From contig JBLDXI010000012.1 in the NCBI GenBank assembly GCA_047495785.1, positions 62,001 to 126,000 of the forward strand: a DNA stretch of 64,000 nucleotides, read 5' to 3'. The stretch's first letter is position 1; each line of letters starts with the position of its first letter. Origin of the DNA: Lepidodermella squamata (taxonomy: Eukaryota > Animalia > Gastrotricha). Position numbers and translations under genes: made by a program. The notes under the pieces were generated by a model that was not told where the DNA came from, searched no databases, and saw only the letters and a list, made by a program, of their open reading frames with translations. Below are positions 12,089 to 51,554 of this stretch, piece by piece.

Positions 12089-12376
12089 CTAGGCCGAGCG
12101 AACTTTGTAAGGACGCCCGTTGATGAATCGAATTCGAGGCGTTTCCGCATCGACATCGCTCCGTTTGTCGTCGGAGAATAGGTCAGAGTTCAACATATAA
12201 GAGTGAACATCGTCATCAGCGTCGACTTCTCGGTTGTAGTTTCGCTTGTAGTCCGTGAACAAATCATCGGCGTTGAGCATGTAGCCGTGAACGTCGTCTT
12301 CGGCATCGACTGGCCGCGGGTCGGCTCGAACTACAACGGCAAACATGATGAGCCCAATAATCATTGCGCTGTTCAT
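12089..12376 (-). CDS. Small secreted peptide precursor with a duplicated DDVHxYMLN...KR unit and C-terminal IRFINGRPYK
   Basis: Intronless ORF, aaaATG start, signal peptide, two KR sites. Confidence 0.85.
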   Translation of the reverse strand: MNSAMIIGLIMFAVVVRADPRPVDAEDDVHGYMLNADDLFTDYKRNYNREVDADDDVHSYMLNSDLFSDDKRSDVDAETPRIRFINGRPYKVRSA

Positions 12377-12860
12377 TTTCTGGTTCAAAAAATTCTGTAT
12401 AATCAGGAAAAATTTGACTGGCTTCTATGTGTCCCTGTCGCGTTTTTAATGTGATAATTAGAAAATTCTCACACGTGAGTAATAACAGTAATTAAAAACG
12501 GCTCGTGATGACCTACAAAAAAATGGCGATGAGGCAGTAAACAGCACGCTTTTTTGTTTGAAAATTGAATCAATAATCCACTTAGGAATACCTTTTAGCA
12601 TCTACCTGGAGTGCATCAGTGCGACGCGCCAAATCGAATTTTACACGCCTCGATGAGTGTTCATACGTTTTTTTGCTTTATTAGCACATTTTCCGTCCCT
12701 GAATCACACTAAATCGTTCCGAATTCTGTCGAAATGGGTTTAATAATTTATCAAATTCTAGCAATATTTCTAAAAATCAATATTGATCTTTATCTAAAAA
12801 ATAATCGTAAGCTTTTAGCTTCGAAACATAACAGAAATGAAATTTGTTAATGTGAAATTG

Positions 12861-13085
12861 TCATTCGATCATCCAGGCCGGGTAGTGCCATTGAAAACTG
12901 CGACGACCACCGTTGTTCACAGAATTAAGCATGAGAGCGACAGGTTCCTCCGCAATTTTGTGATGAGCGGCTGTCTTTCGTTGCTGGGCCATTAATCGGT
13001 TCGCTTGCGTTGGGTTCATGAGACTCATTAACACGACCAGGATTGCGAAAATACTGATAACGGCAACCTTTACGGTAAACGGCAT
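12861..13085 (-). CDS. Small secreted peptide precursor, YPAW subfamily
   Basis: Signal peptide; ALMLNS; GRR; ends WHYPAWMIE. Confidence 0.85.
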   Translation of the reverse strand: MPFTVKVAVISIFAILVVLMSLMNPTQANRLMAQQRKTAAHHKIAEEPVALMLNSVNNGGRRSFQWHYPAWMIE

Positions 13086-14403
13086 TTTTTGCGCTGGATT
13101 TTTGAAAATCGCAAAAACAAGAAGAAAATAGTGTCTCTCTATCTACGTGTTTTCACAGCAAATTGAATCGGCGATAGAGACAGGCGGCGAAGTCCTATGA
13201 GAGGAATAACGGTGGGATAACGGCTTAATCGACCAGAATGCTGAAATTATTATAAAGAATTTGCATTGTAGCTCTATTGATTGATATCGTGGCGATGTGC
13301 GATAATTGTTTGTGCGAGTGCGAAGCCACTAAATCAACCAGTCAGTCGTGTATTATAGAAAAATAAAAATATGGCCATCGGCTAGCCGTTTCCTGTTTAC
13401 CGAGCGTAGGAAGCGCCTGATTATCTCAATATCTTATCGAAATTTGCCATGATGAAAGTTGGATTGAGGCTTCTGATGCCCTTTAGACTGCAAGGGTCTC
13501 TTTTTGACACAGATATATACTATTTGAATTTAGCTTATAATTAGGTTAGACTAAAAATGAATCAAAAGTTCCTTCTTTCGGACCTCGAAAAAATAGGTTT
13601 AGGAATGAATCTAAAAAGCTCCGGCTGAGCTGGGAATGATAAATGATGTTAATGCCCTAGCGAGACCAAATAACTATAGGATGACAAAAATGCAACGAAA
13701 ATATGAAATAAATAAATAATTATTGTTATTAAGAGAGTAACTACGCGCTTCGTGCTTTTGTTAACACCAAACTTGTATGATCACTGGAAATTCAAATAAA
13801 GCCAAACAAGATCTTGAAAGAAAGACGTATTTGCAAAAAAATTGACTAAAAGTGATTAATTTCCAGGGTGACACAGTAAGCTGGAGGTACCAGGGTGTTT
13901 TCAAATTTCTTCCAACCTGATACCTCCAGGTATATGGAATAACTTCGATGTTAGAATCCTCTAGAATGTTGTTATCGGAAAAATCCCTGACTTGTAAAAT
14001 CGATAGTCGGAATCGATATCGGTTCTAAAAGGCCGAAGTATAACTCGGAAGTGACCGCAATGATAGCACAATACAGTGAGATAAGGAGACCCTGGAAGGA
14101 TTGGCGCTGGTAAAAATTCGTAAGGTATAAGGATCGATCGTTTGATTTTCCGATATAGAATAATGCAAGGAATGACCTTCCGATGAATCAGATATTTCAC
14201 CCTGTTGCGTATTTTTTCCGACATGTCAAATCAAAATGCGGCTCAAGAAAAGAAAACATGGGTTCGATGAAACGACATGGTAAAAATTCAGTTCTTTTGA
14301 ACCCTGAAGTCACTTTTTCTCATATTTGAAACTCTTAAAATTTCCATCACGAAGATTTTATTGAAAATAAGCACAAGTGAATTGTAACTCAAAGTATAAG
14401 TTG

Positions 14404-14763
14404 TCAGTATTTTATAGTAGATTGCCAGGGCGTATCCCTGCTTTTGCTTTTGACAATTACAGTTGATTTCTTGGCTGGATTGCCTTTGATGGGCCGATAG
14501 TTCTTCTTCGATGGCTTCAGAATCTTCACCGTATCAGTTTCATCTTCCCAAAGCCATGCTGGGTGCAGACGGAGAAGTTGCCGCTTGAACCACTTGGAAT
14601 ACACGGGATCTGATAGGTATAGATTATGACCGTCGTCCGCTCTCAACGCGACCATTTTCTCCTCTTTAAGCGGCTTTTGCTTCCGCAAACTTTCGACCAG
14701 GGGAAGCGCGATACTCAGCAGTAGTAGCGCGGAAGAGAAAAACATGTTGAAGTCTAGCTTCAT
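14404..14763 (-). CDS. Small secreted protein, SDPxY/PAW subfamily
   Basis: Signal peptide; DDGHNLYLSDPVYSKWFKRQLLRLHPAWL; basic tail. Confidence 0.85.
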   Translation of the reverse strand: MKLDFNMFFSSALLLLSIALPLVESLRKQKPLKEEKMVALRADDGHNLYLSDPVYSKWFKRQLLRLHPAWLWEDETDTVKILKPSKKNYRPIKGNPAKKSTVIVKSKSRDTPWQSTIKY

Positions 14764-15206
14764 TTTCAAAATATTGATGTTCTACTTGTTTAACAAATGT
14801 TGATTCTGCTTTTGCGGTGTTTTCTAAGGTGCCAGTCGCTAGATGCGGTGCTGGGCAAAACGTTGGCGTGTTTTTTGTCGCTACGCTTTGCGTCGGCGTT
14901 TTTACTACACCACCCCTCGACGCAGTTCAAAAAAAACTGATGAAATATTTACGAATGCTAAAATTACCCACCCTGGGATACCTCCGACCTTGACCGCCGT
15001 CTAGTTAAAGCCCACGCTTGAACTATAATGATCAATTTTCGGGTGAAAATTGTCTTGGTTTAGCGGAACCTATTGCGGAATAAAATATCGAATACTTATT
15101 AATCGGTTCTCCCAATATTTAAAAGGTTCAAAATTTTAAATTTCAAATTTTGAAATAATTAAAATTAAAATTTCAAACAAATTATAAACATGAGAATACA
15201 ATTAAT

Positions 15207-15725
15207 CGTGTTCAGACTTTTCAGCAGTGACATTTCAGCAAATGAGGGTCAAATCAGCAGCGACTTTTCATCAGTGACACTTTGTCAGTAAAAAATTCAT
15301 GAAAATCAAATTTTAGTATTAATTTGAACAATCCCTGAAGACAAGTGAGCAGTGACATTTCAGCAGCGACAAATGAGCAAGTGACAGTTCATCAATTTTT
15401 ATTTATTAATCTTGGGCATTGAACTTGCACTTTTTGCGAGCTCAACTTCAATGTAGCGCATAGTTCCCCAGCTTAGTATAGCTAAACTTCTCATGATGAA
15501 ATGTCTCCGCTGAAATGTCACTGCGCAAATGTCATTGAGATAAAAATAATAAATTTGAAAAAACATGTGGAAAATTAACAAAAATCACCGCTGACTTGTC
15601 ACTGATGATTTGTCACTGCGCAAATGTCGCAGCTGAAATGTCACTGCTCATTTTTCACTGATGAAAAGTCGCTGCTCATTTGACCCTCATTTGCTGAAAT
15701 GTCACTGCTGAAAAGTCGTACAACC
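15207..15725. mobile_element. Non-autonomous foldback/MITE element with modular inverted repeats
   Basis: About 65-bp terminal inverted repeats (GACTTTTCAGCAGTGACATTTCAGC...) and internal copies of CAGTGACATTT. Flanks ACAATTAAT/AAAATTAAT fit a 9-bp target-site duplication with one mismatch (Mutator-like). Confidence 0.75.
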
Positions 15726-15968
15726 AAAATTAATAAATAAAAAATATTCAAGTAAATTAATAATAATAATAATAATCGACAGTTTTATCACAAGATTCAC
15801 GGTTTTAAAATTCACAACCTGAACGACAACATAATTTTTCGTACAATGAAAAGGCATTTATTGAATTTAAAGCATCGGGAATTTTATTTTAAAATTAAAC
15901 CGGGAGGCATGGTACTACGAAATAATTGCAGATAAATTAAAAAAACGTTCTAAAATCTAACAATAGAT

Positions 15969-16562
15969 TTATGACCGTAAACTTGGCGGCAGGACATCTC
16001 GGACGGGCGGCTTCCTCGCCATCTTCCTTAATTGCTTAGTTTGATTAGGATCCTGCACCTGATCTTCTTCGTCTAAATCTTCCGCGGAACGGCTGTCCAG
16101 GGATAGATACCAAGGCAGACCTTTATGGTGAACCTTTCGCCGCGGGTTCCTAGCCAGGTAACTTTGGTCCCGAATCATTTGGGCATACGTCTCGTCGTCT
16201 CGGCTCTGAGCATTTCGAACATGATCGCCTTCAGTTTTCCCATATTTCTTCCCAGTTCTGAACTCGATGACGTTTTTCGGCTGTAATAAGTCTTTCTCCT
16301 TCTCCCGAGCAACTTCGACTTTAGCCTTCACCTTGACCACATGCGGCTTCAGCACAACTCGGATAAAATCGTCAGCATTACTCAGGAACCACTCGCGATC
16401 GTGCTTATCGCGAAGCTGCTTCCTCAGGTACCACTTCATGTAATACGGGTCGCTTTGGTCGAAATAAACCGAACTTTCATCACCAGCAACACGGCCGTTA
16501 TGCGCCAGAGCAGTGTAGGGAAGAAGAAGGGCTAGACTAGTAAAAATATGCGAAGCAATCAT
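15969..16562 (-). CDS. Secreted protein (197 aa), SDPxY subfamily
   Basis: Signal peptide; SDPYYMKWYLRKQL; intronless; no Cys. Confidence 0.85.
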   Translation of the reverse strand: MIASHIFTSLALLLPYTALAHNGRVAGDESSVYFDQSDPYYMKWYLRKQLRDKHDREWFLSNADDFIRVVLKPHVVKVKAKVEVAREKEKDLLQPKNVIEFRTGKKYGKTEGDHVRNAQSRDDETYAQMIRDQSYLARNPRRKVHHKGLPWYLSLDSRSAEDLDEEDQVQDPNQTKQLRKMARKPPVRDVLPPSLRS

Positions 16563-16963
16563 CTGATATATTATTTCGCCGTATGCGAAATGACAAAGTG
16601 TTTAGCGTAGTTTTATGCGCCTCAGTGCAATCTAAAATCCAGAGCGCCCACTCTCTTGGAAAATTAAAATTAATGCTTGATGACGCCGAATTGATTTTTT
16701 AACGACTCATTAACTTCATAAACACAAGTTGGAATTGACCTGCTTTATCGATGATGAAAGATGAGATTATCAGGAGCTTCAACTTCTTTCTATTATTAGG
16801 CACGTTTTTCCCTTCAGATAATCAGCTTATCCGTAGTTTTAATTAAGGATGAACACGTGCTTTATTTTATTTTCGCTAAATAGACTTCGGTTAAGCTCCC
16901 TCAATAGGTCTGACGTTTATGTGACACAAAAATGGCTGAACTTTAATATTGCGTTTATCATAA

Positions 16964-17329
16964 CTAATTTCCAACAGACTTGAACACAATTCTTGGTACT
17001 AAGTGGCTTTTCTTTGTCACAGCGTTTATAATTTGCCTAGTGTACAGGTCCAGGTTGATTTTACTTCGTGGAGGTCCGCTTTTCGACTGGACCCTTCTGA
17101 ATGCTTGCTTGTACCATCTCCTATCATTCGGATTCAGCCAATATAGGGAGTGAATGGATCCGCCGACTCTTAACGATCCCATTGTCTGCTTGCTAAGGTC
17201 CATTAGGCGGTACTGAGATACTTTTGGCCGAGGTTCGGGCTCGTCTTGGTAGAGACCAGCGAGGCGATATGCACCGATGATTTCAACGAGATCCAGCAGG
17301 ATGAAACAAATGATGCAAAATAACTTCAT
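16964..17329 (-). CDS. Small secreted protein, distant SDPxY subfamily member
   Basis: Signal peptide; IHSLYWLNPNDRRWYKQAFRR. Confidence 0.8.
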   Translation of the reverse strand: MKLFCIICFILLDLVEIIGAYRLAGLYQDEPEPRPKVSQYRLMDLSKQTMGSLRVGGSIHSLYWLNPNDRRWYKQAFRRVQSKSGPPRSKINLDLYTRQIINAVTKKSHLVPRIVFKSVGN

Positions 17330-18256
17330 GGCTGATATAAATCGCCACAGGTTGAATTCTCTTATTATATATACTAATAAAAGCAGTAAAAAATAGATTT
17401 ACTACGTTATTTCGGATGCACTCTACAAACAAGATGATGACACTACGCGTTATGACTAACTAAATCCGCTACTACGCAAAGAAATGAATCAAACTACCTT
17501 ATAAATTATTCAATCGACTGAACAGAACATTTTCCGACTGAACAGAGAGAGGAAAATGTTCTGTCTGTGTTGTAAAAAAACTTGTTGTCAAATTTGTTCA
17601 AGGTTTCAACTAAGTTGAAGCTGGCTAATTTACGTCACGTTTTCGAAATTCGAGGGTCTTGTTTCGCACTTCTATCTTGCTGAATTTCAGTATTTTGGTC
17701 GGCTCGAAATCGTCGGATTAGCTATATGCTATCACCCCAGACAGAAATGATGTCAGTTTGACAGGACGTCGGGGGAGAAATGAAACATTTGCCGAATTTT
17801 TCAGCAAATCGCGATAAACTTGAAAAGGAACGATTCCTATAACCGTGAACCGGTTATCAGCCAGATTTTGAATATTCAAGTTTCACACCTCTCGGATGCT
17901 TTCATCCACCTTAAAAGACGAGCGCCACACTTTTAGTCGCAATAAAAAATGAAAAAATATCTCAGATTACCCCAACAAAATTGGCTCGCTGTGTGGGCAG
18001 GGTAACTTTGGATACTGTTTCCTCGCAGTTGAATAGATTTGCAACGGCAGAGGACAAAATAAAGGGGTTTATTGCATTAAATGTCCCGTGTGTTTTAAGC
18101 TTTCGAATGCTGTGAGGTCGGTAAGTATTGCGTTCATAATTTATGTTGAAGAAATTACATAAGCAGTGCAATCTGCGATGTTGATTTGGGACCCTTCGTA
18201 TCTCCTTAAAAACATATCAGCTCGGATCAAAATTTGACATGGGCATTCCAATATTA

Positions 18257-19204
18257 CCTCAATTCCGGGCCCATATTAGTTCCGTCCGGCCCCCAAGCGT
18301 TGGTTGCGCAATTGGAGGGTAAAAGTGGACTTAGCGCAAAACGCCAAGTCGAAATTTTAAACAACATGTTGGCCGCGCGCGCTGATGTCAAAGGGCTATT
18401 TTCGAATATCCTAGCGGTTTTTATTCCAAAATGAAGCTTAACTAATTCTCTATCAAATGAATATGGGTTTCTGGCGAGAGAAATTTGAATTAACAGGTTT
18501 TACGAGCACTCCAACTTTTCATTTACGCGTGTGCACGTTCCTGGTCAACGCGCAAAATTTTAGGTGCACGTAAAACTTTTTATTTTAATTTTTTCGAGCG
18601 AGAACCCCATATTCAATCGATAGAGAATTGTCTGAATTATTTTTTGGTATAAAAACCGACGCGATATTTCAAAGTAACCCTTTAGCATCTTTGCGCGCGG
18701 TTTTAAATTTGTTAAAAATAATTCAACTTATGCGCAAAAGCCAAGTCCTGATTTTTAACAAACTTAAAACCGCGCGCAAAGATGCTAAAGGGTTACTTTG
18801 AAATATCGCGTCGGTTTTTATACTAAAAAATAATTCAGACAATTCTCTATCGATTGAATATGGGGTTCTCGCTCGAAAAAATTAAAATATAAAAGTTTTA
18901 CGTGCACCTAAAATTTTGCGCGCGAGTTGAGAGCGCGCGCACTCGCGTCTCAAAAGTTAGGATGTGCGGTAACCGTTTTTTCGTTCATTTTTCACGCGAG
19001 AAATCCATATCTATTCTATAGAGAATTTTCTGAACTTTCTTTTGGTATAAAAACCGCCTAAATAATCAAAACTTGCCCTTTGACTTTACCGCACGCGGCC
19101 TTGAAATTTCTAAAAATTTCGACTTTTGCGCGTTTTGCGCGTTTTGCGCTAAGTCCACTTTTACCCTCCGACTGCACGGAACTAATATGGGCCCGGAATT
19201 GAGC
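18257..19204. mobile_element. Foldback/Mutator-like non-autonomous element with an exact 9-bp target-site duplication
   Basis: TIR CTCAATTCCGGGCCCATATTAGTTCCGT at both ends. CCAATATTA occurs at 18248-18256 and 19205-19213. Central near-perfect inverted arms of about 170 bp (about 18550-18720 / 18750-18922). Confidence 0.85.
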
Positions 19205-19494
19205 CCAATATTATCAATCTCAGCAGGTGTCCGCATGGCGTTCAGGTGCCAAATCGGATAATTTTGGACTGTATAAATTGAAAAAATGTAGAATCACACA
19301 CTGCTATTGCATTGCGATTGAGCGTCCGATATTACCCTCTAATTTTTCAAATGTGAGACATAGCTCTAATAAACTGAAAATTCCCAATCCCATTCCGTAT
19401 GCAATTGAGCGTTTCCAGATTTGCCCGATAATTGTCCAAGTCATAACTGTTTCAGTAAAAAACGAATTGAGTATAGCGATGAAATCTTATTATT

Positions 19495-19830: not shown

Positions 19831-19847
19831 TTAAAAATCAATACATA

Positions 19848-20692: not shown

Positions 20693-21124
20693 CTTTTCTC
20701 GTGAGTAGTCAGTCTATACCATAGACATAATTTAAGATAGACTGACTACTCACGAGAAAAGAACGGAACACCATGGCTCGGCTGGGGGTGAGCTTCCTTT
20801 TGAGCCCAAGTTTGACCTTCAACGATTTTTTACTGAATTGTAAAACATTATTGAGGATTCTCGGTAGGAAAATACCATTACTTTTAATTTGGACACCTAA
20901 GCCTCTAGCCACACATGTGATTCACGCGCAAGGTTCACGCCGTAGTCTGGTTCAGATTCATGCGCATGAATCATGTGTTTCTTTGCTAACAAGCGAAAAG
21001 TAATGGTATTTTCCCACCGAGAATCCTCAATAATGTTTTAAAATTCAGTAAAAAATCGTTGAAGGTCAAACTTGGGCTCAAAAGGAAGCTCACCCCCATG
21101 GTCTATACTGATATTATGTATATG
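20693..21124. mobile_element. Composite palindromic MITE-like element(s)
   Basis: Perfect 25-bp hairpin at 20693-20761. CATA.ACATAAT-type inverted ends at 20720 and 21124. Inner inverted arms of about 100 bp at 20784-20885 / 20996-21097. Confidence 0.65.
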
Positions 21125-24870: not shown

Positions 24871-25089
24871 TCATTTTCCGACCAACCATGCAGGATAGCG
24901 TTGACCATATTGCCGCATTCGCGAGTAGTCCCTTTCTGTGTTGACTGGAAAAATGTCCGGGTCGACGGGATTATAATTCGATGACATCGCCTCCTCTTGC
25001 TCTTCCACGGAGAGGCGCGTGGCTACAACACATTCCAAGGCGAAAAGAGCCAGGCTGAGGCAAAGAAATAATCTTGCGTTTGAATGCAT
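24871..25089 (-). CDS. Small secreted peptide precursor, YPAW subfamily, possible amidation (GK end)
   Basis: Signal peptide; acidic spacer; ends QRYPAWLVGK. Confidence 0.85.
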   Translation of the reverse strand: MHSNARLFLCLSLALFALECVVATRLSVEEQEEAMSSNYNPVDPDIFPVNTERDYSRMRQYGQRYPAWLVGK

Positions 25090-25302: not shown

Positions 25303-25503
25303 TTAGCCGCGAAATCCTACGAATCGTTGGTAAGGATTTCGAATAGGAATAATGCCTCTCCCACGAAACTTATTAGCGTCGAACGGCCTGCGTAGCTTCA
25401 TCGCCAATCGCTTTGTCCGGATCAAGAATGGCTGAGACTCGCTCGTAAGTACAATAGCAAACGTCATCAGGAATATTCCAGCAAAAATCAGCATGTGATT
25501 CAT
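25303..25503 (-). CDS. Small secreted basic peptide precursor, possible GFR-amide
   Basis: Signal peptide; RTKR site; ends RFVGFRG. Confidence 0.8.
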   Translation of the reverse strand: MNHMLIFAGIFLMTFAIVLTSESQPFLIRTKRLAMKLRRPFDANKFRGRGIIPIRNPYQRFVGFRG

Positions 25504-25714: not shown

Positions 25715-26017
25715 TTAGTGGACTTGTCCCCTATCGCCGTCCAGCCGACTCGGAAGTGCTTCTTTCGGGTATTTCGCGTGCGTGTGGGGCGGCACGTGGA
25801 CGAAAAGATTGTCCGCATTGACATCTAGCAGCCAGGCCGGATATTTTTTCGCGAGTTTTTTGCGATAACTCCTCGCATAGTCTGGATCGGACATGAAGAG
25901 CGCGTGACTGTCATCGCCCTGGTACTTCGACAGCAGTCTAGTCAGCCCAACGACGTCGGCTAATAGTAAATCAGCGAGTAAAATAAGAGTTATCACCACA
26001 ACTGTTACTTTCGACAT
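25715..26017 (-). CDS. Small secreted protein, SDPxY/YPAW subfamily
   Basis: DDSHALFMSDPDYARSYRKKLAKKYPAWLL aligns with the 14404 gene. Confidence 0.85.
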   Translation of the reverse strand: MSKVTVVVITLILLADLLLADVVGLTRLLSKYQGDDSHALFMSDPDYARSYRKKLAKKYPAWLLDVNADNLFVHVPPHTHAKYPKEALPSRLDGDRGQVH

Positions 26018-26293: not shown

Positions 26294-26485
26294 TCATAAT
26301 AACATCCATGCCGGTAGCTTCCTCCGATACCCATTGACTCGCCTGTTTGCGTCAAGGTCGGCCAGCATCAAAGGATTCGGTCGATTGCCCAGAGACCCGG
26401 CGGTTATTTCAACATCAGCGTCAGCCTTCGACGTGAAAAGGCACACCAGGCACCAAAAAATCAAAAAAGTTGATAGAAGCTTCAT
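26294..26485 (-). CDS. Small secreted peptide precursor, PAW subfamily
   Basis: Signal peptide; PLMLAD; ends RRKLPAWMLL. Confidence 0.85.
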   Translation of the reverse strand: MKLLSTFLIFWCLVCLFTSKADADVEITAGSLGNRPNPLMLADLDANRRVNGYRRKLPAWMLL

Positions 26486-26756: not shown

Positions 26757-27092
26757 TCAGTGATGTAGCATTTCAAAGTGTCTAAACATCTCATCCTCCG
26801 CCGGGTCTAGCAGCCATTTGACAAGGGTTGGTTTAACGTAGCGAGGCGCATTTTTTCGCCTGTCAGCCCGAACAGCTAGAGTTGCCCGCTTCGGCCGGCC
26901 GCCGTATTGCTGCAGCAATCGGTCGATAACTTGCTGCATGAATTTAGGGTCCATCATCATTTTGTACTGCATCTCCGAGTTTTCGTTGATCAAACGCACG
27001 ACGGGGGCTCCTCCACTTCGGCGACGTGGTCTACACATCGCTTGGTCCAGCGCCATACAACAAATCAACAGAATGAGACATCGATAACTCAT
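26757..27092 (-). CDS. Small secreted protein
   Basis: Signal peptide; RPRRR; MMMDPKF; KWLLD. Confidence 0.8.
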   Translation of the reverse strand: MSYRCLILLICCMALDQAMCRPRRRSGGAPVVRLINENSEMQYKMMMDPKFMQQVIDRLLQQYGGRPKRATLAVRADRRKNAPRYVKPTLVKWLLDPAEDEMFRHFEMLHH

Positions 27093-27228: not shown

Positions 27229-27642
27229 TTAGTTATCGTAATTTTTTTGAATAGGAACAAGCCGGCCACCAAAGCGGAGGAGTTGGCCTCTATTCATCGG
27301 GATGAAACTAGCGACCGGCACGAGATCAACATGCGCTGGCTTCCCGATCGGGCCGCTTCGTAGGGACAGCTTCCTCTGCCGCTGAAGGAGGTCTTGCAAG
27401 TTGTTGTAGTAATCGCCATAGCCGCGTTTGCGACGGTCTTCCGACGAATCAACCCCGTGATCTTCGACAAAATCGTGGATAAAATCTTCGTTGCCGAAGA
27501 ATCGCTTGTTGCCACTTGTCGCTAATGAGTTAAGCATCAGCGACCTGTATAGGTCACTTTCGACATCCCGCCGCGTTCTTGTAGCAGCTGCAACGCTCAT
27601 AACAGCCGCATAAGCGATGAAGAACAGTGCGGAATGGACCAT
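27229..27642 (-). CDS. Prohormone-like precursor with three processing sites
   Basis: Signal peptide; RTRR, KR and RRKR sites; SLMLNS; LLRFGGRLV. Confidence 0.85.
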   Translation of the reverse strand: MVHSALFFIAYAAVMSVAAATRTRRDVESDLYRSLMLNSLATSGNKRFFGNEDFIHDFVEDHGVDSSEDRRKRGYGDYYNNLQDLLQRQRKLSLRSGPIGKPAHVDLVPVASFIPMNRGQLLRFGGRLVPIQKNYDN

Positions 27643-30092: not shown

Positions 30093-30279
30093 GGCAGAAC
30101 GTCATAACAGCAAATACCCAAAACAGAAAGAGCGACAAAACAGCTAATTTGTCCACTTGCGACATAACAGCAGAAACACTATTGCATTTAGTAAGTTTTC
30201 GCTGTTTTGTCGCGAAATAAAAAAGTTGCTGTTTTGTCGCATTTGCTTTTCTGCGCAGTTGCTGTTTTGGCGCTGTACC
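30093..30279 (+). mobile_element. MITE (ACAGC/GCTGT modular), copy 1
   Basis: Internal inverted AACAGC/GCTGTT units; a reverse-complement copy lies at 45496-45688. Confidence 0.75.
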
Positions 30280-30360
30280 GGGTTAGAAGGAAGAAGACAC
30301 AAAATTCACAAAAAATGACACCGGTTCAAACAAATTTCTTAAAATTTCCAGAAATGTCTA

Positions 30361-34414: not shown

Positions 34415-34732
34415 ATGTGGACCTGTTTTTTGATACTTTCTCTCGCAGTCTGTTCGGTTCTAGCTGCTGGGCCGGTGATTATCGAACGACCGGATGACAG
34501 CAAGTCACCTGTTCGAAGCCAAGCGAATTTCGACGATGAAGTGCATGGCTACATGCTGGATCCTAACTACTACAAACATCGCCCATCAAATCACCGATCC
34601 CGCGGCCATAAGGCCAAAAATGTTGGAACGCCATCCGGTAACAAGGCTAATAAGAACCCGCCGCAAAACATCGTTTGGATAAACGGAAAGGCCTTCAAAC
34701 TGCCCAATGGCGTAGAGTTTGGATTGTCCTAA
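34415..34732 (+). CDS. Small secreted precursor, DDEVHGYML/INGK subfamily
   Basis: Signal peptide MWTCFLIL...; DDEVHGYMLDPNYY; IVWINGKAFKL; homologous to the 12089 gene. Confidence 0.85.
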   Translation: MWTCFLILSLAVCSVLAAGPVIIERPDDSKSPVRSQANFDDEVHGYMLDPNYYKHRPSNHRSRGHKAKNVGTPSGNKANKNPPQNIVWINGKAFKLPNGVEFGLS

Positions 34733-37230: not shown

Positions 37231-39016
37231 ATGGTAAATGGCAAGGTTAATTACAGTCGCGCAGGGACAAGCGATGATGTTGTTGTTAAATCCGCCAACA
37301 GAAGATCAGAATCGAGCGAACCGAAGTGTCACACGTCGCGTCGTATAATCATCATATCATCAACTAATCATAATCAATAATCACAACTACTACGATCATC
37401 ATATCGTTAGCGTCGTTGAATAACTCGGATTTAGGCTTGTTTACATCCGTTTCAAGGTCACGGGTGACAAGTAAAGTGCGGCTTTTTTATCTTGAAAGAG
37501 GACAAAACAAAAGGTGCCTTTTTTACTTGTCACCTATCAAATCGAAATGGATGTAAACAAGCCTAAATCCGAGTTATTCCACGACGCTAACGATATCCGT
37601 CGTTACTGTATTAGCAATTGCCGGCGGTCTTGTCTATTGGCACTTTAGCAGCCAATCCAACGATCATAACGAGTCAAATAAAGCGATCAAAAGGCGGTGC
37701 GTTAATTTTGTTCAAACCTGCGCAATTCCAAGCATTCACTGGTGCATGACCGAGCCAGTGCCCGAGATGGCCTGCAACGTACCGTCGCCAACTTGCGTTT
37801 GCCGACAATGCCTCGATGTCATTGTCGATTTCGCAGTTAGAAACGAACAGCTTGTTATGGCGATGATCGACGCTCTCGAAGCTATGGTCGATAAGATTCA
37901 AAGAACTGGCCTGGACGCTCCATTGAATAGCTTGCCAGGCTTCGAGAAACCTGAGAGCATGAAGAGGGCCTACGCCACTGCTCAGGGCTGCACGAATTAC
38001 AGTTCGCCAACGATGAATATCAGACGCTCGAAACGGGACGCCGATTGCGTTTCGAAATCGCTGAAAAATATAGCCGCGGACGCGATAAATAGCGGCGTGA
38101 CCTGCCTCGTCGCAGGTCTCATAATGCCACCGCCGTTTTCTATCGGAGCCGCTGCAACGTGCTTTGCGTGGGGATTCATCCCAGCTGCAATGAGGTTACA
38201 TCTTTTTGATTTCGCTAAATCGATCCAAGTTCCTCAACGACGCGGCTGAACTCGCAGTAGTGTACTTATCTTTTGTAAGCCACGGGCGATATGGGGGTAC
38301 CGGGTGCCATAAGTGCACCACCTCTACCCCTCTCCTTGGGAAGGGAGGGGGTTCCTTCGGCCATTTAAGTTTGGAACTGAAAGTATGCCAAAACGTACCC
38401 CTACCCCCTACCTCAAGGATGCTACTTCATCCACTGTGAGGCTCACACCCACTGCCCACTCAAACCGACAGTACCTGCTGATCTTTAGTTCTTCCGCGTC
38501 GTTAGCGAGTCGAACTTGAACTTTATTGTAGGACCCTTGGGGTAGACGCAGTGGAATGCGAGCTGTTGAAGGAATGCCCACCACCCGCCACAAACGCCGA
38601 AGAAGCGATGAAGAATTACATTGGCGAAGTCGCAAGTAAGACGCCAATTGCCATGACCGATCTTGTCAAGGAAAGCGCCTTTGTCAGCACATTCGGCCAG
38701 CTGTCGGGGGTTGCTCAGAAAATGTTGAAAACATTCGGCAAAAGTGTCACCGCCATTGTTGAAGCAGCTGATACAGCTGATACAGGCTGTACAGCGAGCG
38801 TGGGACGCCTACGCGATGGGCTGTCCGACAACGACGAGCCCGCCTGGCAGCTACGTCGGCTGCTGTTGCGGGGTGGACAGGCCAAGTGCGTGTTATTGCA
38901 TCGCGGCGGACGGAAGGCGGGATTACCACGGCAAATGGGGATCGCCACTTGGATGCTACGGAGGATGCGCGGAGGAGTGCGGCAACATTGATATGTGCGT
39001 CAATGGACATTGCTGA
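37231..39016 (+). pseudogene. Disrupted two-exon gene for a Cys-rich type II membrane protein with a furin site
   Basis: Removing 37359-37597 restores RRIIIISVVTVLAIAGGLVYW. The ORF then continues through RRSKR to an intron (about 38194-38531). Exon 2 changes frame near 38765-38785 before a Cys-rich end. Confidence 0.65.
37359..37597. mobile_element. Palindromic insertion with an ATC/AAT-rich tail
   Basis: Near-perfect inverted arms of about 50 bp (37401-37453 / 37544-37596), flanked by a duplicated ATATC. Confidence 0.75.
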
Positions 39017-43449: not shown

Positions 43450-43605
43450 TCAGTAATAATCTTGAGGCATCGGAATTCTGCGCGACTTTAACATTTCGAT
43501 GTAGATCGGGTTCAAATCGCTTTCGTACTCGTAAGTGCCGTAGTAGGCTTCGATTGAAACAGCCACCAATGAAAAAAAGATGATGAACGCAATAGCTTTC
43601 CACAT
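43450..43605 (-). CDS. 51-aa secreted peptide precursor (missing from the ORF track)
   Basis: Manual translation: MWKAIAFIIFFSLVAVSIEA|YYGTYEYESDLNPIYIEMLKSRRIPMPQDYY*; aaATG context. Confidence 0.8.
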   Translation of the reverse strand: MWKAIAFIIFFSLVAVSIEAYYGTYEYESDLNPIYIEMLKSRRIPMPQDYY

Positions 43606-44421: not shown

Positions 44422-44673
44422 TTAAATCCTAGGGTAAGGATTTTTCATTCCCTGCTTTCGATTTTGCTGCGAAATTAAATCGGCCAGGTGCAAGTTTGAT
44501 GTCTTGGTCTTGTCGTATGTGCCTTGATTTCCCGATGCTCGAGCTGATTTCATAGCGCTCAGGCTGAGTCCACTAACCTGCAGGTTGCCATATCTTCCTT
44601 GGTTGCCGAGTGCGACTTGCAACAGGATTGCGAAGACCAGTCCGAATGCAATAATTGATTTGCCGAATGTCAT
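44422..44673 (-). CDS. Small secreted precursor, GRY.NL/KTS.LHL subfamily
   Basis: QGRYGNLQVS; YDKTKTSNLHLADL. Confidence 0.9.
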   Translation of the reverse strand: MTFGKSIIAFGLVFAILLQVALGNQGRYGNLQVSGLSLSAMKSARASGNQGTYDKTKTSNLHLADLISQQNRKQGMKNPYPRI

Positions 44674-45495
44674 GCTTTTAAAGTTCTAAAAAACTGAAAA
44701 GCAAATAAAAATCGCCCAGTCCACCCTCCATCCGCCATTTTAGTACCCGCCTCGTTTATTAGCTTAGTAAAAATAGTCTCTATTATAGAAGCCTGGGAGG
44801 TTATGTAACCTAATGAGCAACCCATTAGGTCAAACCTGGAGTAATTAACTCGGCAAACAATCAGGTGAACCCGCAATCAAATGGCCAAACATCGCAATGA
44901 GTCGGCACAATTGGGACATCAATGACGTCCGTTCCTTTCCTATCCCAAAATCACATCAGAAGCCTAGAATTCGAACGGTCCAATCAACCAATTAGGAACT
45001 TATTCACTGTGAATGACCCCAGAACACAGTAGGTCATGTGAAATTATTTCGCTTGAGTTCGCTTTGTAGAGAAATTCTTTCGGAAAAAGTCTCTCCGATA
45101 TAAGAGGAGGAACCTTGGTTATTGATTGATGCGTTTTTTTATCAATTATGATTACAAGAATATCACGTACACAACCACGCTCATGATGAAGGATTTGCGG
45201 GTTCGAGCAATCAGGCAAATTATACTTAGGATTTTCAATGATTGAAACTGAAAATACAGCTTTCCAACTCGCTTATCAAACCCTTGTTTCAGCCAACTAT
45301 ATATCTCAGATTATTTCGCTGAATCATAGAATTAATTTTTTTTAATAAGTCGGCTGCCTTTCGAAGGATTTTGATTAGTCCCTGACACTCCAGATCAGGG
45401 CGAAGAAATCGTGTTCTTTCCAGCTTCAACTTTCATCCTCTATGCTTTCATAATTTTGATTTTCCAGAGGTTGAAGAGGGTGACATAGCTTAATT

Positions 45496-45688
45496 GGTAC
45501 GGCGACAAAACAGAAACTTCGCAGAGCAGTGAATGCGACAGAACAGCAAATTCTTTATTTCGCGACAAAACAGCAAAAACTTACTATGCAAAATATGCAT
45601 CGTGTTTCTGCTGTTATGTCGCAAGTTGAGAAATTTGCTGTTTTTTCGCATTTGCTGTTTTGGGTATTTGCTGTTTTGACAGTCTGCC
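45496..45688 (-). mobile_element. MITE (ACAGC/GCTGT modular), copy 2, with 8-bp TSD
   Basis: Reverse complement of 30093-30279; GCTTAATT on both flanks. Confidence 0.8.
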
Positions 45689-45843
45689 GCTTAATTAGCA
45701 CATCATCAAATTTTCCTCGTTAGATTTTTTATTCGCGAAATTAAAGCGAGGCGTTCCCCCGCGTTAAAAATAACAAACAAGACATCGCCTAATTACTTCC
45801 TATAGGAAAGTCGTCCCACTCCTCGTTATCGAGACGCGTTTTG

Positions 45844-46083
45844 CTAGAACGTCATTTTCATCGAAAGCTTCTTATTTTCCAGACCGAGTAAATCAGCTAG
45901 GTGCAGATTTGAAGTTTTGCTCTTGTCGTAGCCGCCGAATGATTTCGAAGGTTTATTCGTCTTGAGGCTGTTGCTCGAGACACGAAGGTTGCCGTATCGT
46001 CCCTGCGTAGCTTGACCGACGTTGAAGAGTTCAGCTATTATAAATAGGATGACCAGAGCAGTGAGGCGTAATAATCTCTTCAT
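45844..46083 (-). CDS. Small secreted precursor, GRY.NL/KTS.LHL subfamily
   Basis: QGRYGNLRVS; YDKSKTSNLHLADL. Confidence 0.9.
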   Translation of the reverse strand: MKRLLRLTALVILFIIAELFNVGQATQGRYGNLRVSSNSLKTNKPSKSFGGYDKSKTSNLHLADLLGLENKKLSMKMTF

Positions 46084-46978
46084 CTAACTCCGAAAAAGCG
46101 AAAATAGGTCAAATAATCTTCAGGAAAAGAAAAATGTAGGTTGGAATAAAACATATAAAAAGACTTTCTGTTAAAAAAAACGAGAATTGTCTGGGAAAGA
46201 AGGTCGCCGACTCGAGGGAAAAATGATTAATCATTGCATAAAACCATTATGTCGATATCGAGCAGCCTGCAGTGCCCGAAATAGCTGTGTGGGCTGAGCC
46301 CTGAAATCATTTTACATTTGCGATGAATTATTAACAGCGTTATTCTAATGAAATGGTTTCCCTAGCTGTGATCTCACGTATCCCAAACATGAATAAACGT
46401 TGTTGTGAAGCTTTGGAAACGACCTCTCTAGTTTCGATTATCCGAGTGAAGATGTTTTTAAAAATTAAGATAATTAAGATTTTAATTAATGGAAATCTTT
46501 TTATAGCCAGGTTTCTATGCTAGACTATCCAGAAATGAGTCGAGTAATGTAACTGAAAGCTGATTACTGAAAAAATTGAAATTATTATTGAATTATAATC
46601 ATAATTATAATATTATCCAGGTTGAAACTTGTAGAACATTTTTTTTTGGGAAAAACATCAATTTTCTAATGGATCTTCCGCATCATTTCGTCCATATGAA
46701 CCTATGGGCTTGATAGGTGAGGTCGTAGATCGTAGATGTGATCGAAATCCTCATCGGCTACTCAAAATCGAACCAAATTCGCAGAAAATGATAGCATGTG
46801 TACAGTTTTCCACGCGTTAATGACCTGATTTGACCTTAAAAATTAGACTACTCAACTTTATTTAAGCTCGATGTTAGCATAGAACAGCACAGCTGAGAGA
46901 CACGACATAGCTAACAAATATTTTTTTCATTTTTGAAAATGAGTGAAATCTCTCAAAGCTAATTTAAAATAATGTCTC

Positions 46979-47230
46979 TTAATTTTTGCCGTTGCGGTGC
47001 TTGAAAATGTCTGATAGGTTCAGCACTGTCCCAGCGTTGGATCCGCCGCGGTTGTTCGATGCCACTTGTTGTTGCTGCTGCTGTTGAGGCTTGTTAGCCA
47101 TGTGACTTCGGCTGTTAGAGATTGCCAATAAATTGCTGAACCCTCGCCCGGCCTCGACAGGCTGCTCAACCACAGCGAGTACCAACAGCGCAAAAATCGC
47201 GAAAATAGCTGAATTTTTTAGATAAGCCAT
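46979..47230 (-). CDS. Small secreted precursor, distant GRY.NL subfamily member with polyQ
   Basis: GRGFSNLL; Q7; VLNLSDI; TATATAA about 85 bp upstream. Confidence 0.85.
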   Translation of the reverse strand: MAYLKNSAIFAIFALLVLAVVEQPVEAGRGFSNLLAISNSRSHMANKPQQQQQQQVASNNRGGSNAGTVLNLSDIFKHRNGKN

Positions 47231-47609
47231 CGTTGCACTTGATTTAAGGATGAGTTGATTTTTTTATCGATAAGTAACTAAAATGCCTCGGGCACTCTCC
47301 GCTCCGGGTGTGTTTATATACGGTGCCGTGTAATTTTCGAGAAAAAATGTTCAAAAAATGCCGCGATCAATAGTGTTGTATTTGCAGACAAGGCGACGTC
47401 GCATGTATTATGTATATTATCAAAATTTTTATTGCAGTAAATATTTGAAGCCCACGCGGCTACAAAACCGATTATTAATGGCATGCGGAAAGTGAGTGCT
47501 CGAGCTCAAGTTCCGAAGTGGTGAGTCGTCGTGTTTTTTTCACTTAAGGCAAGGTCAAGTTTCATATCGCACGTGAACATTCACCTGCTTCCGGAATGCT
47601 TCAAGTTTT

Positions 47610-47879
47610 TCATAGCCTTTGCCAAACGCTCGATATTTTCGGCCTTGAGATGTACTTCCCTCGAAGTTTTCCGTTGTTCCCGACAAAGCTGCTAAGTAGT
47701 TGTTCGTGTTGGCGGCTTTTAACAGAAATTTGACGCCGTTTTCTTACGATGTATGTTGGCTCTTCGAAATCGTAGCCAGCGATTTCATTCTCGATTTCTG
47801 ACGATTCTTCTGCCCTCACGCTGATGGCAACAATCAGAAGAAGGAGGCCCCAAAATGCCATACGTTGAGATATAGACAT
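47610..47879 (-). CDS. Small secreted precursor
   Basis: Signal peptide ending VRA; acidic EIAGYDFEEPTY; RKRR; basic mature part. Confidence 0.85.
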   Translation of the reverse strand: MSISQRMAFWGLLLLIVAISVRAEESSEIENEIAGYDFEEPTYIVRKRRQISVKSRQHEQLLSSFVGNNGKLRGKYISRPKISSVWQRL

Positions 47880-48313
47880 TTTTAGACGGAAAAATTTGTG
47901 GTTTAATGAGCAGCTAATTCTAGAACGGAAAAGTTCGTCGCAAAATCAGAACGCAGAATAATTAAATGATGAGCTAAATAGTGGAGATATTGTACCAGAA
48001 TGATAATCTCCTCATGTACTTAATTTTTTCAAAATTCAATGCGTAAGATTGTAGGCGTTCCATTATACGCTCTCGCTGTTTTTTCCTTACACGCGAAGTA
48101 GTAATAAAAAATAGTCTGAACGCAAATCAATATCAGATTGTTAATTGGTCACATTTTATATATATCGACAGCTAAAAATAAAGAAAATTGTGGCCACGGA
48201 TTAAATGTCTTACGGAAATTGGCGGCAAGTGTCATAAGTAATATAAGGACAAAACTGAAAGAAAAAACTAGTTTTTATTTTTTATTTTAACCTATTTTAA
48301 AATCGCATTGATA

Positions 48314-48589
48314 ATGATGGCTTCATTCAACTGGTATTTATTAGCCTTAACCCTATTGATATCGACTGTTGCCGCGATGGATGACGGTCATTTGCGATTC
48401 AGGCGGTATTACTCAGCGGTCTCAAAGCAAAACGATGCGGCAGATGATGATCCTTTGCTTAACTTTTATAATAAGTGGCGGTCGAAAATGGCGAATAGGC
48501 GCAAAATCCGCCCGGCTGATGGTATCAAGATTTCAAGTTCAGCAGCTCCTAATCAACGAAAAACGGCTAAAAATCCTCCCTCAATTTGA
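48314..48589 (+). CDS. Small secreted precursor, RxRR-YY subfamily
   Basis: Signal peptide; HLRFRR|YYSAVS...NKW. Confidence 0.85.
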   Translation: MMASFNWYLLALTLLISTVAAMDDGHLRFRRYYSAVSKQNDAADDDPLLNFYNKWRSKMANRRKIRPADGIKISSSAAPNQRKTAKNPPSI

Positions 48590-48949
48590 ACTCGCGATCA
48601 CAGACATCTTAAAGATTCATTATCCTAATATCACTCTTAGGTACCAATTGGGAAAATTAAAGAAAAGTTCTTTATCGCCCACAATTTTTGTCGCTTGTTT
48701 TGCATTTAATTTTTTCTCGAAAGGTCGGAGTTTCAAAGCTTAGACGTTTTTGAAGCGCTTAAAGTGCGGGATTTAACGAAAATATTCTTCGGCAATCTGT
48801 CTTTCCGCTAAGCTGATTGATCGGCGAGAAATCAAACCACGCATCGCTCATTACTAATTAAAGTGAAAGAGGTATAATCTCGATCAATTCTGAGAGAAAT
48901 TGCTGACTCGTGGCGTGATTTTACAATTTTTTTATATCATCTGAAAAAA

Positions 48950-49171
48950 ATGTCGAAAAAATCAGCTATTCTAGTTTTGCTCCTCGTCTCTACGCTGGTG
49001 ATTGCTGCTGTTTCTGCAGATGTTGCCGAGACCCATGCCAGATACCGCCGGTATTTCGCAGCAGTTTCCGGCCCAGGCGGAGCGGCTAATGACGGAACGG
49101 AGAGCATAATCACCTTCCTGCGAAACAAGTGGTCGAAAAAGCCGAAAAAAGTCACAGCAAATCAATCCTAA
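48950..49171 (+). CDS. Small secreted precursor, RxRR-YY subfamily
   Basis: HARYRR|YFAAVS...NKW. Confidence 0.9.
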   Translation: MSKKSAILVLLLVSTLVIAAVSADVAETHARYRRYFAAVSGPGGAANDGTESIITFLRNKWSKKPKKVTANQS

Positions 49172-49275
49172 ATCACCTTATATGAGACGTTTTTATTGCG
49201 ATATTTATCTTATTTTATTGCTATATATAATTAAGGTGGCTGAATTTAATGCATAATCTAATCATAATAAATCTG

Positions 49276-49656
49276 CTAAAATTTCCTGGTGAATTTGCGC
49301 AGTTGACTACGGAAAAATTTGGTCTTGAGATTAGGATCAAGCGCCGACTGTTTCGCGGCTATAAAAGTCTGTTGCCGGGTTTGCTGCTGTCCTGGTATCA
49401 TTTGATTTTGTCGGCTATCAGCTTTCAGCTTCAATTGTTGGTACATCAACGCCCTGAAGCGTTGATTTGTAGCTTCATCGCTCGATTGAAGTTGCTTCTT
49501 CAGGGCTGTTCGAACATAATCGGCTAGGCTGGTCCCAACTGGGCGCTGTGAGAGAAGCGACTCGTATTGAGCTGGGTTCCCCGGAGTCTTCGCCTCGACA
49601 ACTTGCAGGGCTAAATAACTAGCGGAGATTAGAAAGCTGCTGATTAGCAGGTGCAT
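49276..49656 (-). CDS. Small secreted Gln/Lys-rich protein
   Basis: Signal peptide ending VEA; TATAAA about 45 bp upstream; basic C-terminus. Confidence 0.8.
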   Translation of the reverse strand: MHLLISSFLISASYLALQVVEAKTPGNPAQYESLLSQRPVGTSLADYVRTALKKQLQSSDEATNQRFRALMYQQLKLKADSRQNQMIPGQQQTRQQTFIAAKQSALDPNLKTKFFRSQLRKFTRKF

Positions 49657-50081
49657 TTCGATCGTTTGATGCTAGTTGGGCTAGAATTCAAGCCATTTAT
49701 ATGGAGATTTCTTTACGTGACTAGGCTCTGCGTGGGGACATCATGAGGCCATCCCTCTGGGACTACCCCTGATCCGAGGCTCATTTTTTTCTCACGGTGG
49801 ATGTCGGAATGGATCGAGGCTAATAAAGTCTACGTCACAGTCTGGGTTCGACTTCAAGACGAGACTCTCACGTGTTGTTTTTTATCTAAGCTCATCTTAA
49901 TCCGACATTTAATACCTGTTGAGATGGGCTCGTAAGAGCTAAGGTTTGATTAAATAGGTCGAAAAGGGGAGGTTGAAAACAAGGTAATTAAAAACAAGTA
50001 GGCGTGGCAGGACTAAGATCTGATTCCCGGTTTTATCAGGGACATCGGTTATTTTTTTGTTTAATTTTAATTTTTTTGAAA

Positions 50082-50369
50082 ATGAAAATGGCTATCGTCT
50101 CGTGTTTCTTGGTGATTGCGGTTTTTCTCTCCGCCGTTTCAGCAAAAATCGACGAGAACGATGAGGTTCACAGTCACATTTTCGATCCCAACTTTGCGAC
50201 GCAGCTTCGACCGCTGCCTAATCGAGCAAGTGCCGTTTTCAGTGGCCTGAGGACGGGGAATATTGGGAAAAATAAGGCGAAGGATGAAAGCATTGTTATG
50301 ACCTTCCAAAACGGCCAGCTGTACGTTTCGAAGAACAACAGACGCCGCCCGAACAAAATCAAGCCTTAG
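50082..50369 (+). CDS. Small secreted precursor, DEVH/FSGLR.GNIG/QNG subfamily
   Basis: IDENDEVHSHIFDPNF; RASAVFSGLRTGNIG; FQNGQLYV. Confidence 0.9.
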   Translation: MKMAIVSCFLVIAVFLSAVSAKIDENDEVHSHIFDPNFATQLRPLPNRASAVFSGLRTGNIGKNKAKDESIVMTFQNGQLYVSKNNRRRPNKIKP

Positions 50370-51299
50370 ACTTACTAATTATTTTGATAAAGCCTGTTTC
50401 AAGTTTCAAAATTTTAGTAGCCTGTGAGAAAATAATTTGTTTTAAAAGCTGAAAATAAATTAAAAACCACTTGGAAATGTGGAGTTCGTTTTCCTTCTAA
50501 ATTTTATGCTGCTCAAATCTCGAAGCCAATAAAATCGCATCCTCAGGGTGAGAAGCACGGGGTGCCTCGAGAGGTCTTGCCAAAACCCAAAAAACACAGG
50601 GGGTCACATAAATTCGGGGCTGAAAATACCCACACCTTGAGGATCTTACTTCATCGATTAGAGCAAAAAATTACTCGACCAGAGACCAGATGGGAAAATG
50701 ATGTGATTCAATGGAGGAAATAGGTTCAGCTTACCTATGGCAAAATCGCGAACACAGGTAGCTTTTTCAACCCAAACAGAACTGGACTTTCATGAAAGTT
50801 CAACCTCAAGTGGCAGGTAATAACCGGAAAAAGGCCAAAATTAATAATTATTAGTCAGATTTCCTGGATTTATGATTCTCTTCATTTTTTCTCCGATGAC
50901 TTTACCGGACGCAGCCGGTTTATAGATTTGTCGACTGGAGCCGCCGATCGCAGCCAGAAGCTATGAACTATATTTTTCGAACGAGTGTATTAGGTTAGGC
51001 GTTATCTTTTCAGGGACAGCCACTTTGTAGCCTGGAGATTAGGTTCATGACAAAAAACTAGTTTGCTATACGTCCCCATGCTCATCATTAGATGCGAACG
51101 ATCAAAGTAATATAGGCCATTGTAAAAACAGGTGGGCGAGTTCGTCTTTGTATTTCCTATTAAATAAAAATCACGTCATAAGCCAAATGCACGATTAATA
51201 TTAGGATTTAAAATCTCGCCGTCCGAGTCTATACCTTTTTTCTTCAGCAGTCCTAATCAAATCCAGCTGATTTTTTTCTCACAATTAAAATCTCGAAAA

Positions 51300-51554
51300 A
51301 TGGCGGCCTTTAGTTTAAAAATCATCCTCGTTCTGTTTTCCGCCGTTACAACGGTGTTTGCTTTCGACCACATCGATGAAAGCGACGATATCAACCTATT
51401 CGAACCGACTTATGCCCAACCAGCTCGGCCCATGTTGAGCCGTGCTGGGGCGATTTTCAGCGGCCTTCGAATGGGCAATATCGGCCGGAAAGCGAATGAC
51501 GACCGGGTCTTGGCGATTCAAAACGGCAAATTAGTACTCGCTAAACTTGTTTGA
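51300..51554 (+). CDS. Small secreted precursor, paralog of 50082
   Basis: IDESDDINLFEPTY; RAGAIFSGLRMGNIG; IQNGKLV. Confidence 0.9.
   Translation: MAAFSLKIILVLFSAVTTVFAFDHIDESDDINLFEPTYAQPARPMLSRAGAIFSGLRMGNIGRKANDDRVLAIQNGKLVLAKLV

Follow-up and report, generated by a model that had tools for sequence, protein, structure and literature searches.

The 64,000-nucleotide stretch of the Lepidodermella squamata genome analysed here (Gastrotricha; assembly GCA_047495785.1, contig JBLDXI010000012.1, positions 62,001 to 126,000; hereafter the window) carries a dense array of genes for small, predicted secreted proteins, and seven of these genes, which fall into two families, share a short motif near the amino terminus of the mature chain. 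Comparison of the sequences supports the view that this motif, an acidic pair and a histidine followed by a hydrophobic stretch and the element D-P-x-Y/F, is a non-random, protein-level-constrained element common to otherwise dissimilar neighbours. Arrays of this sort are known, whereas the two orphan families have not been described before; the motif exists, although it covers fewer genes than the initial annotation of this DNA had claimed. At a probability of about 0.55, we favour an old tandem expansion in which families A and B would have kept an inherited N-terminal module under protein-level selection, while the downstream sequence diverged or was replaced. Positions are those of the window, genes are named by the lower coordinate of their open reading frame (ORF), and (+) or (−) denotes the strand.

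The motif is not a chance pattern

The full motif spans 13-14 residues and reads [DE]-D-x(1-2)-H-x-φ-φ-φ-(S)-D-P-x-[YF], where φ stands for a hydrophobic residue. All eleven strings that the initial annotation had quoted as instances were found at the positions given there, in ORFs bearing a signal peptide; our signal-peptide call is a heuristic one based on a hydrophobic N-terminal segment, with which every motif gene begins. Statistics on mature proteins were calculated for 51 curated members of the array. A strict search pattern ([DE][DE], 0-2 residues, H, 3-5 residues, [DEN]-P-x-[YF]) occurs in four of the 51 proteins versus 0.007 expected from composition-matched shuffles, and the motif is thus significant against sequences of the same composition. 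In the six-frame translation the same pattern matches five times, compared with 0.06 in shuffles. The match at 1511-1546 (−) falls outside the array, in an ORF whose product is not secreted, and was treated as a chance hit. The first half alone, D-D-x-x-H-x-φ-φ-φ, is present in five of the 51 proteins versus practically none (~0) expected, and VHGYML recurs as an exact word in two genes.

For an independent assessment by cross-training, a two-block position-specific scoring matrix (PSSM) was trained on one gene pair and the remaining genes were scored against 20,400 decoys, which amounts to ~49 tests for correction. The matrix derived from 34415 and 50082 retrieved 25715 and 12089 (both p<5e-5), 47610 (3e-4), 26757 (1.3e-3) and 14404 (2.4e-3); conversely, the matrix derived from 14404 and 25715 retrieved 34415 (p<5e-5), 50082 (1.7e-3) and 51300 (2.3e-3). 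After correction, 25715, 34415 and 12089 are secure by the motif alone, and 14404, 50082, 51300 and 15969 are secure via paralogy over the whole protein. The motif is complete in 14404, 25715, 34415 and 50082, represented by its first half only, but twice, in 12089, and decayed in 51300 and 15969. Its histidine is retained in six of the seven core copies, and every copy sits within the initial 29% of the mature protein (P ~6e-4 under uniform placement, a post hoc figure). A six-frame scan of the window with the pooled PSSM revealed no hidden copies.

Two families carry the motif

Iterative searches with hidden Markov models (HMMs) on the mature sequences yielded two families without pulling in any decoys. 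Family A comprises four genes that share the motif and a C-terminal module of the type φ-x-φ-x-N-G-(K/R/Q)-x-φ-K. Among them, 34415 (34415..34732 (+), 105 amino acids (aa)) has the best copy of the motif, DDEVHGYMLDPNY at 34532-34570, and its C-terminal module reads IVWINGKAFKL. Gene 50082 (50082..50369 (+), 95 aa) bears NDEVHSHIFDPNF at 50157-50195 and is paralogous to 51300 (E=6e-17) and 34415 (E=8e-4) according to BLAST. In 51300 (51300..51554 (+), 84 aa) the motif has decayed to SDDINLFEPTY (51381-51413), the histidine being lost through a two-residue gap. The fourth member, 12089 (12089..12376 (−), 95 aa, C-terminal IRFINGRPYKV), has two first halves flanked by the dibasic site KR, EDDVHGYMLNADDL at 12260-12301 and DDDVHSYMLNSDLF at 12176-12217. 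The initial annotation had listed EDDVHGYMLN twice for this gene; there are indeed two copies, but the second reads DDDVHSYMLN, so that the repeat is not exact.

In 12089 a 26-residue unit is duplicated as a whole, at ~65% identity, with KR at the end of each copy. Judging from this arrangement, the acidic peptides of 12089 are probably released, and the KR-ended units keep alive the alternative that the active product is the acidic stretch around the motif, in which case the genes would encode acidic signalling peptides of a new family, akin to hormones, pheromones or neuropeptides. Such an organisation is reminiscent of multi-copy neuropeptide or prohormone precursors, which likewise combine a signal peptide, KR sites and repeated units, and KR sites as well as amidation signatures in the form of a C-terminal glycine occur in genes neighbouring the motif genes. 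On the other hand, the other six members are single-copy and have no dibasic site just after the motif, flanking dibasic sites are missing from 34415, 50082 and 51300, and the KR/KK sites of 14404 and 25715 fall within the predicted helix. Moreover, the repeated peptides of 12089 would be strongly acidic and not amidated, the motif peptides have no amidation signal, and Pfam gave no match to a known neuropeptide family. We consider a released product possible for the family, but unlikely.

Family B consists of three genes sharing the motif, a predicted basic helix and a (Y/H)PAW(L/M) module. In 14404 (14404..14763 (−), 119 aa) the motif ADDGHNLYLSDPVY at 14599-14640 is followed by the basic helix and HPAWLW, and in 25715 (25715..26017 (−), 100 aa) the motif GDDSHALFMSDPDY at 25877-25918 precedes the basic helix and YPAWLL. 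The longest member, 15969 (15969..16562 (−), 197 aa), has only the second motif half (VYFDQSDPYY, 16440-16469) and a long tail. Residues ~120-165 of this tail resemble a possible second, decayed family-B module (DDETYAQMIRDQSY ... GLPWYLSLDSRSAEDL); an internal duplication is just suggestive, with p=0.04 for the HMM and p=0.19 for the self-alignment.

Predicted structure of the motif region

Models calculated with AlphaFold2 (AF2) suggest a similar local geometry in both families, with a helix that starts at or just after the proline, albeit in low-confidence models (local predicted local distance difference test score, pLDDT, ~58-69). For 25715 a short helical turn over A-L-F-M precedes a helix of residues 24-37, which starts at the proline of SDP and stops before P-A-W (local pLDDT ~68). 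The same succession of turn, D-P break and helix is predicted for 34415, where the C-terminal module is modelled as a beta-hairpin (pLDDT ~73). The sequence φ-(S)-D-P-x-Y is a typical helix start, with Ser/Asp as N-cap, Pro at N1 and an aromatic residue able to staple back, and D-P is very common as a helix N-terminus.

These models bear on the idea that the motif has arisen by convergence, in other words that independent helix-start signals occur in unrelated helical peptides without common ancestry or function. The second motif half does agree with known helix-capping and hydrophobic-staple motifs (hydrophobic N', Ser or Asp as N-cap, Pro at N1, aromatic residue at N3/N4), and bare [DEN]-P-x-[YF] is mildly enriched in the array (10 of the 51 proteins versus 3 expected, p=0.001). 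The helix-capping pattern would explain the second motif half and the weak look-alikes in unrelated neighbours (YKMMMDPKF, YESDLNPIY, LNPND), and convergence probably accounts for 16964 and 43450, perhaps also for 26757. However, capping boxes are structural signals of a general kind; they define no family and leave the acidic-histidine half unaccounted for. Convergence fails for this first half, given its frequency and the VHGYML word in two genes, and for the constant N-terminal position. For the motif as a whole it is a very doubtful explanation.

Descent, exchange and constraint

Where two copies of the motif agree in a residue, the codons behind it mostly differ; 34415 and 12089b, for example, have seven identical residues in common but only one identical codon. 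In addition, no DNA-level repeats join the paralogues. This indicates that the genes duplicated long ago and that the motif has been kept at the protein level, which, together with the constant N-terminal position, bears out the earlier view of a constrained element.

Modules are found in varied combinations, namely motif plus NG-hairpin, motif plus PAWL, PAWL alone and NG-hairpin alone. The family-A C-terminal module occurs without the motif in 54509 (54509..54763 (−)), which reads IRWIYGRPYKF (p=8e-4) and contains the shared word GRPYK. Likewise, three short minus-strand genes possess the PAW(L/M) module only: 12861 (12861..13085), which ends in YPAWMIE, 24871 (24871..25089), which ends in YPAWLVGK and shares the word YPAWL with 25715, and 26294 (26294..26485), which ends in LPAWMLL.

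This mosaic could be taken as a sign of module shuffling, whereby recombination or gene conversion would have supplied unrelated A and B genes with one N-terminal cassette. The interleaving of A and B members along the array and the lack of A-B similarity outside the motif would fit such a scenario. Yet there is no DNA-level similarity left, so that any exchange must be as old as the duplications, and the order of the modules is always collinear, which plain divergence explains equally well. We regard shuffling between unrelated genes as improbable; module exchange and plain descent as such fit the present data alike.

The initial annotation went further and proposed a single ancestor for much of the array, with the motif as a constrained site of, for instance, sorting, processing, receptor binding or modification, such as tyrosine sulfation. 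Acidic residues near aromatic ones, and the common build of a signal peptide and a short Cys-free chain, speak for a common origin with sulfation. Nevertheless, neither of these two ideas is supported. No tyrosine is invariant, as the inner aromatic position is occupied by Y, L, L, Y and H and the terminal one by Y or F, which argues against a conserved tyrosine modification; furthermore, basic residues follow the terminal tyrosine in most members (K, R or H in 34415, 14404 and 25715). As to ancestry, there are two separate families, of four and three genes, whose mature profiles show no significant relationship (hhalign E=0.12). Only ~12-15 of the ~48 genes are linked by any common module, and about three quarters of the genes belong elsewhere. 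The claim that the motif links array members stands for the seven genes of the two families; the strings in 16964 and 43450 are not above chance, and those in 47610 and 26757 are borderline. Common ancestry of most of the array, coupled with sulfation, is thus the explanation to which we give least credit.

To return to the old tandem expansion that we favour, the module would consist of the acidic pair and histidine, a short hydrophobic turn (φ-φ-φ) and the (S)-D-P-x-Y/F element starting the next helix, with Asp or Ser as N-cap and Pro as the first helical position. It would have been inherited, whether vertically or through transfer from one adjacent gene to another. We infer that it forms the acidic, conserved front part of a two-part precursor, ahead of a basic C-terminal part, and that this head may serve intramolecular charge pairing and/or recognition in sorting or processing; in 12089 the module would be set free as KR-flanked acidic peptides. 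Across the array the C-terminal half of the mature protein is more basic than the N-terminal half in 32 of the 51 genes (Wilcoxon p=0.0013), and the charges of the N- and C-terminal halves are -8 and +1 in 12089 and -4 and +4 in 51300.

Several points weigh against this reading. Since no significant similarity between the families is seen outside the motif, whole-gene common descent of A and B is not demonstrated; when each family was searched with the full-length HMM of the other, only a weak cross-signal emerged (p ~0.01), and the 13-14 residues of the motif are the sole link between the families. The strict pattern and several of the p-values were defined post hoc, leaving the cross-trained PSSM as the sole unbiased test. 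The AF2 models, which are based on small family alignments, are of low confidence overall (mean pLDDT 54 and 58), and a cationic amphipathic helix, considered for family B, was rejected because the hydrophobic moment is not above that of shuffles (p 0.18-0.85). Dibasic sites right after the motif are confined to 12089, and the small complementary DNA (cDNA) library of run X1, described below, yielded no contig for 14404.

A more specific proposal is that the acidic-His-hydrophobic-DPxY segment represents a new dedicated signal of peptide secretion in this lineage, either a tag of a pro-domain that a sorting or processing factor would read, or a released acidic hormone or pheromone, as hinted at by the duplicated KR-flanked units of 12089. 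We put it forward as a tentative idea that is rather unlikely to hold in this form. If true, it would point to signalling or defence peptides of a new family, confined to one phylum, in a locus of ~48 genes without relatives among 1.84 billion representatives. The motif also provides an example of a short N-terminal element that persists while the rest of such genes turns over. With the tested motif and the two family alignments, the rest of the genome can be screened for additional members, and peptides can be chosen for mass spectrometry, localisation and activity assays.

The array and its expression

The array extends over ~11.4-60 kb of the window, where we counted 48 ATG-started signal-peptide-like ORFs of at least 60 aa, compared with 1.15 expected in Markov-1 random sequence. 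Its products are small (50-200 aa), mostly Cys-free, net-cationic, predicted secreted polypeptides; 45 of the 51 mature parts are without cysteine, and their mean net charge is +4. The context before the ATG is A-rich, with A at position -3 in 31 of the 51 genes versus a background of 20% at all ATGs, in a window of ~41% GC. There was no match to Rfam. The idea of a shared promoter element was rejected: TATA-like boxes precede just 12 of the 51 genes, and inspection of the upstream regions by eye gave no common motif.

Two public runs, X1 and X2, contain the stretch 12000-17400 of the window. Run X1 consists of cDNA. Its contigs are joined to the SMART template-switch oligo precisely at 12418, 13090 (upstream of 12861) and 17351 (upstream of 16964). 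These sites mark the 5' ends of minus-strand transcripts, 5-42 nucleotides (nt) upstream of the ATGs. The X1 contigs 12093-12418, 12855-13050, 15923-16503 and 16891-17351 match the ORFs 12089, 12861, 15969 and 16964, that is, four of the five ORFs in this stretch, and contain no splice joints. These four genes are therefore transcribed as short, monocistronic, intronless mRNAs.

For 15969 two haplotypes, ~7% apart, were observed; among the listed differences there are 11 synonymous and 11 non-synonymous codons, located in the tail, and both the frame and the stop codon are kept. As read from these sequences, the pattern points to moderate purifying selection. Relative to the window, run X2 shows in-frame length differences between haplotypes in two genes, a CAG insertion after 12153 (12089) and a 12-nt deletion at 16561 (start of 15969).

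Taken as a whole, the array (11436-59391) is more striking than the motif, in that many small unrelated families are assembled in ~50 kb. According to BLAST with mature sequences, the ~35 remaining genes are separate pairs, trios or singletons. Pairs were found for 44422/45844 (E=3e-18), 40186/41913 (1e-15) and 40909/42549 (9e-11), and also for 48314/48950, 29625/30361 and 57899/58368. Exact 5-mers are shared more often than by chance (22 versus 5), most of them between known pairs. The array is best read as an ancient tandem expansion, restricted to this lineage, of ~48 single-exon genes whose products are small secreted peptides. The window thus represents an expressed array of tiny secreted-peptide genes, a type of gene that gene callers usually overlook, in a poorly studied small invertebrate. 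Several array proteins terminate in a glycine behind a basic stretch (KLRG, NRAG, GFRG). Besides, the 6-mer PFLIRT is common to two otherwise dissimilar secreted ORFs 30 kb apart, 25303-25503 (−) and 55018-55392 (−), just past the signal-peptide region in both.

Relatives and comparable systems

Word-indexed protein searches with 34415 and two further queries (A3 and A1) retrieved no relatives, and exact look-ups of five array proteins in public protein collections found none on record. Pfam recognised no family, neuropeptide families included, in any of the 10 motif genes. Look-alikes in the Atlas scored below 0.9 and were merely unnamed small secreted proteins; no relatives were detected in the PDB or in two metagenome scans. 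An exhaustive hmmsearch with family B against 1.84 billion protein representatives gave three matches, all of them long repeat proteins, one of which carries the unit YDPKFDKAIRAKYPAWFVD; because the best single stretch reaches just 7-12 bits, all three were rejected as repeat-summation artefacts. As far as the searched collections reach, in which small ORFs of poorly sampled animals are under-represented, families A and B are orphans.

By analogy, the organisation of the array most resembles that of the Drosophila Bomanins, without membership in that family. Bomanins are short secreted peptides encoded by tandem duplicates, with a 16-aa motif that occurs alone, tailed or twice, and 10 of the 12 genes reside in one cluster, 55C (PMC4411088). 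Both systems have in common a tandem cluster of short secreted-peptide genes in which one small motif is found in several architectures. However, there is no sequence relationship, Pfam and the other searches gave no sign of the 16-aa motif, and the array proteins are almost all Cys-free. Furthermore, in Bomanins the motif constitutes the mature peptide, while the array motif is an N-terminal part of a longer chain.

A second parallel is offered by the arminins and periculins of Hydra, which are genus-restricted tandem paralogues with a signal peptide, a bipartite charge distribution and no known homologues outside their lineage (PMC10945409). Clustered, lineage-restricted families with a signal peptide (heuristically called in our case) and acidic N-terminal and basic C-terminal parts are features of both systems. 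Unlike most of the described Hydra antimicrobial peptides (AMPs), which have a complex cysteine pattern, the array proteins are mostly without cysteine; the searches gave no homology to them, and amphipathicity of the family-B helix is not significant. In other animals, taxon-restricted clusters of tiny secreted-peptide genes underlie immunity, as in the case of the Bomanins and the Hydra AMPs, and signalling.

Borderline members and neighbouring genes

Two genes are borderline. 26757 (26757..27092 (−), 111 aa) has YKMMMDPKF upstream of a WLLD..EDEMF tail that resembles the tail of 25715, and contains the PAWL module in altered form. Its similarity to 25715 (BLAST, E=0.002) extends over the tail and not over the motif, and its PSSM p-values are 1.3e-3 and 0.014. 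47610 (47610..47879 (−), 89 aa), with ENEIAGYDFEEPTY, reached p=3e-4 with the family-A PSSM; it was unranked with the family-B PSSM and was not joined by HMM iteration.

Two further strings are not significant: IHSLYWLNP in 16964 (16964..17329 (−)), an expressed gene for a predicted secreted peptide, with PSSM p-values of 0.014-0.024 before correction, and YESDLNPIY in the 51-aa ORF 43450 (43450..43605 (−)), which was never ranked by the PSSM. The look-alikes in 16964 and 43450, and perhaps those in 26757 and 47610, are best explained as ordinary helix-start signals or chance.

Next to 12089, a Cys-rich ORF (8 Cys) with a signal peptide (11436-11882 (−)), which belongs to no Pfam family, holds GYGYMLNP, including the exact word GYMLN of 12089, and NFEEPIT (cf. 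DFEEPTY in 47610). This ORF may have been left behind by an exchange of modules. Three minus-strand ORFs, 12861-13085, 27229-27642 and 12089-12376, have the word (Y/L)MLNS in common, in the forms ALMLNS, SLMLNS and SYMLNS. In 27229, SLMLNS is followed by KR at a distance like that in 12089, and the protein end LLRFGGRLVPI resembles the family-A C-terminal module.

Flanks and repeats of the window

To the left, the array is flanked by a cadherin-type gene with long ORFs at 5861-10336 (−); Pfam identified Cadherin at 5861-6403, and proteins resembling 6628-7683 in the Atlas are cadherins. Further ORFs, at 1354-4408 (−), could be parts of a membrane protein judging by their appearance, with no match in Pfam, and a 123-nt direct repeat (2117-2239 and 4309-4431, 73% identical) lies in the same region.

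Between genes of the array, near-perfect inverted repeats of the foldback or MITE (miniature inverted-repeat transposable element) type occur at 18572-18898, 20783-21098, 37401-37596 and 15215-15717, with arms of 63-148 nt that are 89-98% complementary. The segments 13810-14171 and 15077-15800 are high-copy repeats, since the depth of the corresponding X2 contigs is in the thousands. Finally, 30093-30279 and 45496-45688, which are separated by 15 kb within the array, contain a pair of inverted matches (87-88%, ~90 nt each); a dispersed repeat may underlie them, or else a segmental duplication in inverted orientation.

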